This document shows positions 45,744 through 55,836 of a DNA stretch of 64,000 bases, one piece after another. The translations under genes and the position numbers were made by a program. Location: assembly GCA_946965045.2 (NCBI GenBank), contig OX337232.1:3720001-3784000 (forward strand), read 5' to 3'. Positions within the stretch are counted from its first letter, which is position 1, and every line of letters starts with the position of its first letter. This stretch comes from Epithemia pelagica. Taxonomy: Eukaryota; Protista; Bacillariophyta. The notes under the pieces are model-generated. The model was not told the origin of the DNA. It did no database searches and was given only the letters and a program-made list of their open reading frames with translations.

Positions 45744-48700
45744 ATGAGATTGGGTGTCCGAGGCGGGGCCGTGATACCAAACAACACCCAACCTCGTCGG
45801 AGTGGTCGTCATCGCACTCGTCGTTCCTCCACGACTCGAGCAACAGTGGCACAGTCGTCGTCACCACCACAACCACAAGGCCGATCCTCCTCCTCTGTTC
45901 CATGGTCTTCCCTGTTTGGATGGCTCCGCGCCAACTCGTCTTCTTCTCCTTCTTCGGATACACCACCCAGTCCTCCACCTCCAGATCATCCAGAGGGGGA
46001 TAATGACGACGACCAAACAGCACCGGCTGCCATTCCACCCTCGCCTCCTCCACGAGCGAATGCCACACCACCACCATCAGGTCCTAGTACCATTCGTCCT
46101 CCTCCAAATCATTTGGAGAAGAAGGACGACCAGTCTCCTGTAGTTGCGATTCCACCCTCGCCGCCTCCAAGAATGAATGATACAGCAAGTCCTACCATTC
46201 GTCCTCCTCCGGATCATTTCGAGGAGAAGGACGACCAATCAGCACCGGCTGCCATTCCGGAATCCTCAGGTGCTGCTGTCGTGGTAGAAGAAGAAGAAGA
46301 AGAAGAATCCAAAGACGACTCCTCGTTCTCGGCTGCTTCATCTCCACCATCGCCAGTATTCTTCTCTTTACCCATGCCGGGAGATTTTCCGTCACCAAGC
46401 ACCGTCCTCCACAACAACAACAACGAAGCAGAACAGGAAGAAGCAAAAGAAGAAGTTCACGAACCAGAGGCACTTGGTGGCACGGAATCCTCAGGTGCTG
46501 TCCTAGTAGAAGAAGAAGAATCAAACACCGACTCCTTTTGTTCGGTATCTTCATCACCGCCACCATCGCCAGTATTCTTTGCCTCACCCATGCCGCGAGA
46601 TTCTCCCCCACCATGCTCCGTCCTCCACAACCACAACAATGAAGCAGAAGAAAAAGAAGAAATACAAGAACCAGGGGCACCAAACAGCGACCAAGAAACC
46701 AACAGCCATGACGACGACACTCATCACCACATCGGCCCGACGACAACAACAATGGAAACAAAAGAAGAAGAAGAAGAAGAACGGCTCTCAGTGTCGCCGC
46801 CGGCATGGAGCAGTGCCTCACAGCCACCCAAACAGGACAACAAGGTCGTGGGAACAAACCACCAAGATGATGATGATGACAAAAAAGAGCGAAATGAAGT
46901 TCGCATCCATCTTCCTCCGCACTTGGCCTCCCACAAGGAAGAACGGTCTTCTACGGTCCATGCCGTTGTTGTGTCACCTCCTCATAATCGGCGGCTGCAT
47001 CCAGAACAACAACACGAACAAAACGAAAAAGAAGAAGAAGAAGTCGAACCCAGTGAAAATGACCAATCCTCCAAGGAGTCACCCAGCAGTAAGACCGACC
47101 AGGATATGGCAGTAGCTGACCAATCAACAAAAAAAGAAGAAGAAGAAGACGAGATGGAACGCACCAACCGGACAGCAGCCGCATCTGCAAAATCACCGCC
47201 GATCGCAAACTCAGCAGCTTCACCAACAACAACAGGAACTGGCTTGCATACAGGGTGTCCAGTTCGATTCACCAAGGGAACCTACCTGGGACAGCAAGGA
47301 AGGGTTCTTAGGACGACAGACAAAAAGGTCTGGGTTCAACTCGATACACCAACATCAAGCTCCGCGGGTACGGTGTCTCGTAAACCTGTTTGCGTCATGC
47401 AAGCCAGTGTGGAGCCAATTCCTCCCCAATTTCCTCCCAATGGTGCTAATACCACGACCACCACAACTACAACTTCAGTTCCGACAAATGGGCAGCAGCG
47501 CACTCTGGGAATGGGATGTCTGGTCGAAATCGTAGGAGGCGTTCATGTCAAGGACAACAAAGGATTCCATGGAAGAGTCACAAAGCTTACCAAGGACATG
47601 GTTGAAGTTCTGATCCAAGATAAAGAAATCACAATTCGAAAGACCAGTGTTCGTGTCGTTGTGAACCAGCAGTGTCCTACCACCAGCGACGACAATTCTA
47701 CAACGAGAGCTGTGTTGGATACGGAGCATTCTGAAATTATTACGAAATCCAGAGCTCCTGTGGTGGTCCAGACCCCGTCAGTACAGGGTCTGTCCAAAGG
47801 GCAACAAAAGTCCAAAGCCATGAATCTATCGAGCGTGCCATTGCGCCGATCCGCCAGAAAACAATCCGCCAAGGCTTCCATCACCGTATCAAATCCGAAT
47901 AACTCCAGAATAGATGGTACTCCATTGCAGGACATGAATCAAAACAGCTCCATTGCATCGGGAACAGTTGGTTTGCATTCCGTTCCGGACAACGCTGGTT
48001 CGAGTCGGAAACATGCTGGTGGTACGTGTAAACAGCCGCGAGTGGTCACAAAACGTCGCTTAGAGACGCCAACAGGTAAAAATCCGAAAAATTTTCTGGA
48101 ATATTGGTTTGGTGATCGACTAGAACCTTTGGAAATCCCCATTACCGACGAAGAGGCTTTGAATCCAATAGACATGATCCTTGATGTGAATGGTGCTCCA
48201 TATGAGGGGAGTGGACAATGTTTGGAACTGCTTTCAACCAAGGTTGTGAAGGATAGAAACTCGTCACATCCATATCGCAAACCAGACTTGTTGCAGTTGT
48301 ACTATATAAATATAGATGATGAGGGACATACCTTACAAGACGAGTTGAATGGGCTTGCGAACTTTTCAGCCCTTCCCACCTCCAAAGCAGTGGCGCGCTT
48401 GGAGCTGTTGCAGAGCCTATGTTGTCAGAACAAACGTCAGAAAAAAGGGAAGAAAGTAAAGGTCTCTGGCATTAAAGAACTTGCACGCGACAAATTCGAG
48501 TTACTTCTCACAGAGGGGAATGATGGCTGTGGATTTATCTGCGAGGAATATCTCAAAACTCTCATGACAGAATTTGCGGTAGGGGCATCACCAGAGAGTA
48601 AGAAATGTCGACGGGTTCTGTCGATTCAAGTTCGTGCCGTGATTCCAACGCTTGGTATATTCAAGGGCATGCTCATTCGGAAACGGATTCCACGCGGTGA

Positions 48701-55836: not shown

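Follow-up and report, generated by a model that had tools for sequence, protein, structure and literature searches.

Diatoms silence genes and transposons by means of small RNAs. They possess Dicer, Argonaute and RdRP genes and a working RNA silencing (PMC2724275, PMC4247016); the papers on diatom RNAi list the RdRPs without domain detail (PMC2724275, PMC4247016, PMC3155517, PMC3145265), and the genes appear there just as "putative RdRP". The closest described polymerases are RDR2 of plants (Arabidopsis and maize; PDB 7w82, 7eu0, 7roz) and QDE-1 of Neurospora (PDB 2j7n, 7y7p). RDR2 carries an RRM, a beta-barrel-like part and a 4-helix bundle in residues 1-360 and ends with the neck 3 helix and the head (about 940-1133), which are genetically essential in plants, where truncations of the head domain abolish the function of RDR2, MOP1 and RDR6 (bioRxiv 10.1101/2021.08.31.458351). 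The head of QDE-1 (837-888 and 1196-1372) serves dimerisation and forms a cap over the product groove (PMC1750930). An accessory module fused to a cellular RdRP is described for the DEAD-box helicase-RDR fusions of oomycetes, Dictyostelium, and cnidarians (PMC4791657). Head-less two-barrel cores of about 590 aa are found in the RNA polymerases (RNAPs) P74 gp62 and P32 gp64 of phages (PDB 8f5m, 8f72) and in the crAss-like phage phi14:2; these minimal enzymes are DNA-dependent.

The window analysed here is a stretch of 64,000 nucleotides of Epithemia pelagica (contig OX337232.1, positions 3,720,001 to 3,784,000 of the forward strand). It contains two genes that we regard, with a probability of roughly 60%, as tandem paralogs of diatom KOW-fused, head-less RdRPs of the QDE-1/RDR2 type which make dsRNA for silencing.

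The gene pair and its polymerase modules

Gene 1 (45744..49721) and gene 2 (50770..55836), situated on the plus strand like all features given below, are uninterrupted ORFs of 1325 and 1688 aa, each containing GDLDGD, in agreement with an earlier note on this DNA, in which two intronless genes with an intact DLDGD had been recognized. The start of gene 2 given there (50695) is to be corrected: it is an upstream GTG, and the first ATG is found at 50770, with MRLGVRG as the N-terminal start of both paralogs. The DNA of gene 2 from 53590 to 55926 is 81.7% identical to that of gene 1 from 47505 to 49811, both genes belonging, as tandem paralogs of recent origin, to the diatom KOW-RdRP family.

The RdRP module, about 566 aa long, forms the C-terminal end of each protein (aa 760-1325, 48021..49718 in gene 1; aa 1118-1688, 54121..55833 in gene 2). 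Pfam model PF05183, proposed in the earlier note as a check, is matched significantly by both proteins, mainly at profile positions 347-547 (E 4.8e-20 and 72.2 bits in gene 1, E 1.8e-23 and 83.5 bits in gene 2; cut-off 23.8 bits); the first barrel lies outside this main match and is matched at the profile level only, by the family profile against RDR2. Such a profile was needed because a search of the PDB with the single module sequence gave marginal matches only (E 1e-3). The family profile matches RDR2 with E 3e-13 (residues 491-612 and 775-933) and, more weakly, QDE-1 with E 1e-4.

The AF2 model of the gene 1 module (pLDDT 91.3, pTM 0.92) comprises a part of the slab, DPBB1, a short connector, DPBB2, the bridge helix, and the trigger loop. 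With this model, Foldseek retrieves QDE-1 (E 1e-18) and RDR2 (E 5e-15), and VIA-align yields Z 21.9 for maize RDR2 (rmsd 3.8 A over 425 residues, model 6-557 to chain 381-933) and Z 19 for QDE-1 (residues 501-1140), both alignments covering the two barrels. The comparison with QDE-1 and RDR2 suggested beforehand has hence found both barrels present. Plant RDR2 is the best match in structure as well as in sequence profile and shares with the diatom module the slab, DPBB1 with the K/R motifs, DPBB2 with DLDGD, the bridge helix, and the trigger-loop lysine, at an identity of 19% only; QDE-1 exhibits the same single-chain two-barrel fold. Judged by profile, RDR2 (alpha) resembles the module more than QDE-1 (gamma) does, and of the ESM Atlas clusters those of plant RDRs come closest; the alpha, beta, and gamma clades of RDRs reportedly go back to Zong et al. 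2009.

Concerning the active site, the metal-binding GDLDGD loop (aa 1185-1190, 49296..49313 in gene 1; aa 1548-1553, 55411..55428 in gene 2) is invariant across all 84 aligned family cores. In these cores, K122, R126, R205, K215, D427, D429, D431, and H541 (module numbering) are invariant columns, and the trigger-loop residue K540 is nearly so; the basic residues of DPBB1 correspond to K881, R885, R964, and K974 of gene 1. The GKHGGK motif aligns with AKTGAP of RDR2, such that K1299 of gene 1 equals K923 of RDR2 (K1119 of QDE-1). The gene 2 module is 81% identical to that of gene 1 and retains every residue that is invariant in the family. With PF05183, both DPBBs, DLDGD, the bridge helix, and the trigger-loop lysine present, sequence and predicted structure identify both proteins as cellular two-barrel RdRPs with intact active-site residues, as the earlier note had supposed.

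Some parts of RDR2 are nevertheless missing. Between PSMQKV and GLSDP, where a shortened core had been suspected, about 100 aa are found (aa 993-1101 in gene 1, aa 1355-1464 in gene 2) compared with about 163 aa in RDR2, and the connector between the barrels is therefore truly short, by about 60 aa. In the AF2 model it contains four helices of 8-10 residues, whereas the long neck helices of RDR2 are lacking. Furthermore, the neck 3 helix and the C-terminal head are absent from the diatom module, ORF and model ending at the position of RDR2 residue 933-939 (approximately) of 1133. In most of the 93 listed relatives, the protein end differs from this position by no more than about 10 residues. 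Nor does the pair possess an RRM-bearing N-terminus of the RDR2 type (aa 1-360); KOW barrels and an extended disordered part occupy its place. The loss of neck 3 helix and head, a larger structural difference than the short connector, had been overlooked in the earlier reading. Two downstream ORFs (49944-50519 and 56837-57457) were considered as a split-off head and rejected; they have no Pfam match and are of low complexity or hydrophobic.

Since head truncations abolish the function of plant RDRs, the head-less diatom enzyme may act differently or require a partner, and the family puts in question how general the indispensability of the head domain in plants is. As a head like that of QDE-1 is lacking, the diatom enzyme is, by analogy, probably a monomer with an open cleft.

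This open cleft could admit other templates, which leads to a different reading of the module, namely a polymerase outside silencing that mainly transcribes ssDNA, or a terminal transferase, rather than an amplifier of RNA. QDE-1 copies ssDNA as well as RNA (PMC9508822), and the fold resembles that of the DNA-dependent phage enzymes P74 gp62 and P32 gp64, which share the head-less two-barrel core and a similar size. These align with Z 16, however, against 19-22 for QDE-1 and RDR2, and the minimal phage RNAPs possess no detectable sequence similarity to the diatom family (no PDB sequence match); the comparison with phage YonO-like proteins recommended earlier has thus placed the module nearer to the cellular RDRs. 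In sequence as in structure, RDR2 is a closer match than either QDE-1 or the phage enzymes, and no relatives of the family are found among the IMG/VR viral contigs, for which reason a viral origin was also rejected. We consider a DNA-templated enzyme improbable; it would, moreover, be compatible with dsRNA synthesis for silencing as the main explanation.

KOW barrels and the diatom family

KOW barrels may bind RNA, polymerases, or other proteins. In gene 1, KOW1 (aa 498-562, 47235..47429) and KOW2 (aa 585-646, 47496..47681) are matched by the family repeat HMM with E 1e-15 and 1e-13, respectively. In gene 2, the family repeat HMM matches a barrel of the KOW2 type at aa 711-770 (52900..53079), and a second one at aa 938-997 (53581..53760) stems from an internal duplication (52875-53177 and 53556-53849, 87% identical). 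Gene 1 KOW2 and the gene 2 copies are 71% identical. To judge by the sequences, gene 2 has lost KOW1 and duplicated KOW2. The two KOW-like repeats per protein of the earlier note thus hold in number but not in kind: gene 1 has KOW1 and KOW2, gene 2 twice the KOW2 type and no KOW1.

The repeats of the window stay below the Pfam cut-offs (PF00467 10.9 against 22.3 bits; PF23290 13.7-20.9 against 27 bits), and the matches of gene 1 KOW1 to KOW5_SPT5 (E 2.6e-4) and KOW (E 0.43) are both sub-threshold. As the Pfam scores of the window proteins are insufficient by themselves, their assignment rests on relatives that pass Pfam and on the predicted fold. The repeats align to the KOW positions of the relatives with a common consensus, GxxVxIxxGxYKGxxGxV, which is the KOW motif, and relatives P0004-P0009, P0037, and P0069 reach 24.9-41.7 bits with Pfam KOW (gathering score 22.3). 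For the gene 1 pair, AF2 predicts two five-stranded barrels separated by a disordered linker, with a moderate overall pLDDT of 70-84 (about 70-75 in KOW1, 80-84 in KOW2), and the top Foldseek match of this pair is KOW2-KOW3 of Spt5 (E 1.5e-6), besides DSIF chains. That the KOW-like segments form SH3-like barrels, as had been conjectured, is borne out by these data: by sequence and model they are real KOW barrels, with the barrel fold and the KOW motif of Spt5/NusG (PDB 4ytl, 5ohq; PF00467, PF23290). An NGN domain was not matched by either protein in Pfam at E <= 1, and the polypeptide that bears the repeats is a polymerase instead of an elongation factor; the diatom proteins are therefore not orthologs of Spt5/NusG.

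The family set comprises 95 sequences (93 database proteins and the two window ORFs), 72 of which possess one to four KOW repeats; 43 of the 72 repeat pairs match PF00467 (E <= 0.01). Many relatives match the Spt5-specific Pfam models KOW4, KOW5, and KOW6_SPT5; models of ribosomal proteins, KIN17, and GPKOW are matched by the KOW repeats, too. Some members without KOW have a chromodomain instead (P0032, P0083). The family is built of a disordered N-terminus, one to four KOW barrels, a basic linker, and a minimal catalytic module of 540-566 aa at the C-terminus, and in this large diatom family a KOW array joined to a compact RdRP is standard. For diatoms, this realizes one of the cases named in the earlier note as speaking against its reading, an architecture already standard for stramenopile RDRs. 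The fusion, which that note did not know from characterised RDRs, can hence not be called unusual: the proteins are already in public databases (Fistulifera solaris GAX14361.1 / UniRef100_A0A1Z5JKS3; entries of Seminavis, Attheya, Chaetoceros, and Cyclotella; JGI), and some entries bear the automatic name "RNA dependent RNA polymerase/KOW motif". Its lineage-specific character, supposed beforehand, holds insofar as all named relatives come from diatoms. No paper on the fusion turned up in literature searches that paired KOW with RdRP, diatom, or stramenopile. Compared with the helicase-RDR fusions, which follow the same principle, the diatom proteins carry KOW barrels in place of a helicase, and the core to which these are fused is head-less.

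The window pair resembles the other diatom KOW-RdRPs in one to four upstream KOW repeats and in 30-41% identity across the whole module. It differs from them in its long branch (stem of 0.8 substitutions per site), in unusually long disordered N-termini of about 500-700 aa, and in KOW repeats too diverged for Pfam, with KOW2 replacing KOW1 in gene 2. The window itself thus constitutes a modest gain, namely two rather diverged additional members of a family already in the sequence databases. As for the family, sequences and models show the typical diatom RdRP to be a reduced RDR, devoid of neck and head, in which all catalytic elements are retained and which KOW barrels almost always precede. 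It offers a natural minimal RDR core of about 560 aa, well predicted and suited to biochemical, structural, and mechanistic work, and it opens the hypotheses of a KOW array recruiting template or polymerase and of a monomeric open-cleft enzyme.

Possible roles of the KOW array

If the enzymes produce dsRNA for silencing, they would copy single-stranded transcripts, and the product would supply the Dicer/Argonaute pathway of the diatom, mainly against transposons. The KOW array would then assume the recruiting role of the RRM/beta-barrel N-terminus of RDR2 and might keep the single-stranded template or a partner protein near the open, head-less cleft. The earlier note had considered that the polymerase may couple to nascent transcripts or ribosomes, or may have another template preference.

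The Spt5-like features of the barrels allow a more specific proposal, according to which the array docks the RdRP on an elongating multisubunit RNA polymerase, as do the KOW domains of Spt5/NusG, such that nascent or backtracked transcripts are passed straight to the RdRP. Such an arrangement would correspond, within one polypeptide, to Pol IV coupled with RDR2 and to SPT5L/KTF1 on Pol V in plants. It agrees with the best match of the KOW pair, to Spt5 KOW2-KOW3 and to Spt5 chains of Pol II-DSIF complexes, with the relatives matching KOW4, KOW5, and KOW6_SPT5, with the physical tie of RDR2 to Pol IV (bioRxiv 10.1101/2021.08.31.458351), and with the chromodomains of some KOW-less members, which indicate action at chromatin. 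The NGN domain, however, is the main polymerase-binding part of Spt5/NusG and is absent here, and KOW barrels are generic, as the matches to ribosomal proteins, KIN17, and GPKOW illustrate; we regard co-transcriptional coupling as rather unlikely. A narrower version, in which the head-less RdRP is docked on elongating Pol II at or near the Spt5 site and dsRNA is made co-transcriptionally, appears distinctly unlikely; if true, it would represent an independent invention, within one polypeptide, of the plant Pol IV-RDR2 / SPT5L coupling.

Next after Spt5, the Foldseek search lists tandem Agenet and Tudor domains with H3K9me or H4K20me peptides. Taken together with the chromodomain that replaces KOW in P0032 and P0083, this could point to tandem barrels that read methylated histone tails in the manner of tandem Tudor/Agenet domains and bring the RdRP to heterochromatin. 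Structural cross-matching is, however, common to all SH3-like barrels, the sequence profiles indicate KOW rather than Tudor or Agenet, and the repeat consensus is that of the KOW motif. A role as chromatin reader therefore has a low probability in our estimation.

Second locus copy and N-terminal regions

A second copy of the locus (L001) is 95-96% identical, with both genes intact: gene 1 comprises 1248 aa there, having one N-terminal repeat copy fewer, and gene 2 comprises 1693 aa counted from MRLGV. Between the two copies of the locus, dN/dS amounts to 0.33-0.38 in the core and to 0.11 in the KOW region; both genes are under purifying selection, which at a value of about 0.35 is fairly relaxed.

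The loss of neck and head might also have inactivated the polymerase, leaving non-catalytic scaffolds or pseudogenes in the making. Head truncation does inactivate plant RDRs (bioRxiv 10.1101/2021.08.31.458351), the dN/dS of about 0.35 is not strict, and the neighbourhood is rich in transposons. All four gene copies, however, are free of stop codons, with open frames of 1248-1693 codons, the head-less build is common to the family over many diatom genera with invariant catalytic residues, and minimal two-barrel phage RNAPs of equal size are catalytically active. Decaying duplicates are accordingly a very improbable explanation.

Concerning the transposon-rich surroundings of the gene pair, a role of the pair as transposon cargo was considered and rejected; flanking terminal repeats are lacking, and synteny is preserved in L001. 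For expression, four runs of one study were consulted, all of them Logan contigs of unspecified kind; in run X2, the gene body is covered (45558-49801) and the intergenic DNA is not, which is a hint of RNA rather than proof.

The N-terminal region of gene 1 (aa 1-495, 45744..47228) is disordered and of low complexity by composition. S, T, P, E, D, N, and Q make up 61-62% of the N-terminal 495 aa (gene 1) and 705 aa (gene 2), no Pfam domain is found in these regions of either protein, and the two N-termini are poorly alignable (30% identity). Gene 1 contains an N-terminal tandem repeat (46258-46473 and 46483-46680). Long, independently remodelled disordered N-termini had been noted before, and the composition, the low identity, and the internal tandem repeats agree with this description. 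Relative to L001, dN/dS in the N-terminal region of gene 1 is 0.70, and such a fast-evolving disordered part may serve paralog-specific partner binding or localisation. The linker that joins KOW2 of gene 1 to its polymerase module (47682..48020), basic and for the most part disordered, exhibits zero non-synonymous changes relative to L001.

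The polymerase module and its missing head

Gene 1 (45744-49721, + strand) and gene 2 (50770-55836, + strand) are uninterrupted ORFs of 1325 and 1688 aa, respectively, the latter counted from the first ATG (50770) in a frame that is open from 50527. The start at 50695 proposed earlier for gene 2 is a GTG and lies slightly too far upstream; from the first ATG, the product begins with MRLGVRG, as does that of its paralog. Both proteins match the Pfam family RdRP (PF05183; E 4.8e-20 and 1.8e-23), chiefly in the second half of the profile, and carry the intact DLDGD described in the earlier note within a metal-binding loop GDLDGD (49296-49313 in gene 1, 55411-55428 in gene 2, both + strand). 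Every other feature listed there is likewise present in the window; the interpretation given in the note is, as a whole, supported in part.

A word-based search with the C-terminal module of gene 1 (residues 760-1325) yielded 93 proteins with 30-41% identity; the similarity spans the full 566-aa stretch and, in nearly all of them, ends where the protein ends. In an alignment of 84 modules (A1; adding 759 to the module numbering gives the gene 1 residue), K122, R126, R205, G212, K215, G216, the G426-D431 loop and H541 are invariant, and K540 is nearly so. The A1 profile aligns with Arabidopsis RDR2 (E 3e-13) over two separate blocks, one of which (RDR2 491-612) comprises the first barrel with its K/R motifs and the other (775-933) the second barrel, DLDGD, bridge helix and trigger loop; QDE-1 is matched with E 1e-4. 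Since the family motif GKHGGK is aligned on AKTGAP of RDR2, the nearly invariant lysine corresponds to RDR2 K923, which has been proposed as the counterpart of the Pol II trigger-loop His (bioRxiv 10.1101/2021.08.31.458351).

AlphaFold2 with A1 gave a confident model of the module (pLDDT 91.3, pTM 0.92), for which Foldseek returned QDE-1 (E 1e-18) and RDR2 first, followed by the phage minimal polymerases P32 gp64 and P74 gp62. In VIA-align, model residues 6-557 were superimposed on 381-933 of the maize RDR2 chain (Z 21.9, rmsd 3.8 A, 425 residues); QDE-1 was matched over 501-1140 (Z 19), P74 gp62 with Z 16, and the largest subunits of multisubunit RNAPs with Z 9-10, here only by residues 298-566. 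Profile and structural matches together span both double-psi barrels; both are thus present and the active site is complete, in agreement with the two-barrel silencing-type RdRP assumed earlier. On a less likely, rival reading, these enzymes may carry out DNA-templated synthesis, as in QDE-1.

The diatom module matches RDR2 over 381-933 only and ends around 25 residues past the trigger-loop Lys, so that it lacks neck 3 and the head, both present in plant RDR2. In place of long neck helices, four helices of 8-10 residues are modelled between the barrels, and the spacing from PSMQKV to GLSDP is around 100 aa in both products vs around 163 in RDR2, which bears out the shortened core noticed earlier. 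Head truncations abolish the function of RDR2, MOP1 and RDR6 (bioRxiv 10.1101/2021.08.31.458351), and in QDE-1 the head brings about dimerisation and restricts the modelled duplex to around ten base pairs (PMC1750930). The lack of a head throughout an RDR family is for this reason the structural feature that stands out most here. On a further, unlikely rival reading, polymerase activity may have been lost. A split-off head was sought in small ORFs downstream of each gene, but these are unlike a head.

KOW barrels and disordered N-termini

Neither protein has a KOW hit above the Pfam threshold (PF23290, E 0.047, or 2.6e-4 on the isolated segment; PF00467, E 0.43). In the nearest relatives, two or three KOW hits exceed the gathering score (24.9-41.7 vs 22.3 bits), and the Spt5-specific KOW4, KOW5 and KOW6 models are matched as well; the KOW-like segments of the window align at exactly these KOW positions. 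An iterative repeat HMM found 1-4 repeats in 72 of 95 sequences (the two window ORFs and the 93 database proteins, among which P0001 is the annotated gene 1 model), with a consensus GxxVxIxxGxYKGxxGxV...V.V that equals the KOW motif; this search is partly circular, and an independent check with PF00467 recovered 43 of 72 two-repeat segments at E <= 0.01.

AlphaFold2 models gene 1 residues 495-650 as two five-stranded barrels (pLDDT 70-75 and 80-84) with a disordered linker between them, as expected of SH3-like folds. In Foldseek, these match Spt5 KOW2-KOW3 best (E 1.5e-6), together with Spt5 from Pol II-DSIF complexes and with DSIF KOW6-KOW7, such that Spt5-like docking on Pol II may allow co-transcriptional dsRNA synthesis; an NGN domain was not found in the window proteins. 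The next matches in rank are tandem Agenet, Tudor and KIN17 barrels, and the KOW barrels may alternatively serve Tudor-like chromatin reading. The claim of two KOW-like repeats per protein holds, with a difference between the genes: gene 1 has two distinct repeats, whereas in gene 2 the first type is missing and an internal 300-bp duplication has produced two copies of the KOW2 type.

Concerning the N-termini, the first 495 (gene 1) and 705 (gene 2) residues contain no Pfam domain and consist to 61-62% of S/T/P/E/D/N/Q, vs 40% in the C-terminal module. They align between the paralogs with only 30% identity and include tandem repeats, consistent with the long, independently remodelled disordered regions described earlier.

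A diatom-wide polymerase variant

All relatives that bear a name are diatom proteins (Attheya, Seminavis, Chaetoceros, Cyclotella, Cylindrotheca, Thalassiosira, Fistulifera), and in IMG/VR no relatives were found. Given these relatives and the KOW repeats in 72 of 95 sequences, the architecture is standard for the diatom family, and the earlier view of the fusion as unusual is not supported; a standard architecture, there for stramenopile RDRs, was among the outcomes named earlier as refuting it. Some relatives bear the automatic names "RNA dependent RNA polymerase/KOW motif", "ribosomal protein L24" or "NusG". The variant is already visible in databases, but as far as the literature was searched, no paper describing it was found; publications on diatom RNAi list only "putative RdRP" genes (PMC2724275, PMC4247016, PMC3155517). 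The window genes are new, diverged members of this uncharacterised cellular RdRP variant, which combines a KOW array with a head-less core.

In the maximum-likelihood module tree, KOW-bearing members are found on both sides of the midpoint root and KOW-less ones are scattered, with at least nine forced changes. This pattern fits a KOW array that was present in the ancestor, its absence from some members being due to repeated loss or to truncated gene models. In place of KOW, such members have chromo, RNase H, cold-shock or PDZ domains, and the head-less core seems to serve as a base on which targeting domains are exchanged. Chromodomain, RNase H/Cauli_VI, cold-shock and PDZ modules are situated at the N- or C-terminus of the KOW-less proteins P0032, P0083, P0051, P0093 and P0077.

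The established features are a complete two-barrel active site, KOW barrels, the lack of head and neck, and purifying selection. Such enzymes would make dsRNA feeding the diatom Dicer/Argonaute pathway; the KOW array would replace the RRM-containing N-terminus of plant RDRs and hold a single-stranded template or a partner near the open cleft, and the disordered N-termini could provide paralog-specific interactions.

Evolution and expression of the locus

At the DNA level, the paralogs are 81.7% identical over a stretch that begins shortly ahead of KOW2 and ends around 90 bp past the stop codon (47505-49811 vs 53590-55926); upstream of this stretch they align in patches only. A second copy of the locus (L001; ENA ERZ21939226 ctg1213l) is 95-96% identical with both genes intact and represents the other haplotype or else a closely related strain. 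Its gene 1 has one N-terminal repeat unit fewer, 1.4 kb are inserted between its two genes, and an insertion with a transposase lies upstream. In the module tree, the partner of each window gene is the corresponding gene of L001; all four copies group together on a long stem, with three-KOW proteins as the sister group. The dN/dS of the module is 0.33-0.38, both between paralogs and between locus copies; in gene 1, it is 0.11 for the KOW region and 0.70 for the disordered N-terminus. The pair is constrained but fast-evolving. Synonymous divergence of gene 1 from L001 is 0.09 in the module (48021-49718) and 0.02-0.03 in the rest of the gene; the difference could stem from gene conversion by the paralog.

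Four public runs of one study, for which the kind of run is not on record and assembled contigs are all that is kept, contain the sequence. Three cover genes and spacers alike, a pattern as for DNA. The small 2024 run X2 covers 45558-49801, with zero depth in most of the spacers on both sides (45000-45393, 49925-50121, 50319-50515), an island at 50122-50318 and almost no cover at the gene 2 start; an unspliced gene 1 transcript would give this pattern, which is a hint only.

The upstream insertion (L001 6034-9252, at window ~45007-45012) is 3.2 kb long and carries a DDE_Tnp_4 (Harbinger-type) transposase gene missing in the window, so that the two locus copies differ in the presence of a transposon immediately ahead of the pair; the insertion between the genes (L001 14028-15404, at window ~50002) has a called 400-aa ORF matching no Pfam family. 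A TPR-array gene further upstream (window 35934-40283, L001 626-1434) possesses many more copies of a unit of around 126 bp in the window than in L001, a large difference in copy number. Directly after the gene 1 stop, a unit of around 148 bp is found in tandem (49705-50000), with one copy after the gene 2 stop (55820-55926); this unit may represent a 3' UTR or terminator element common to both genes. Close to gene 1 on its upstream side, an ORF that is conserved in L001 (44120-44737, - strand) encodes an HSF-type DNA-binding domain (PF00447, E 3.5e-17).
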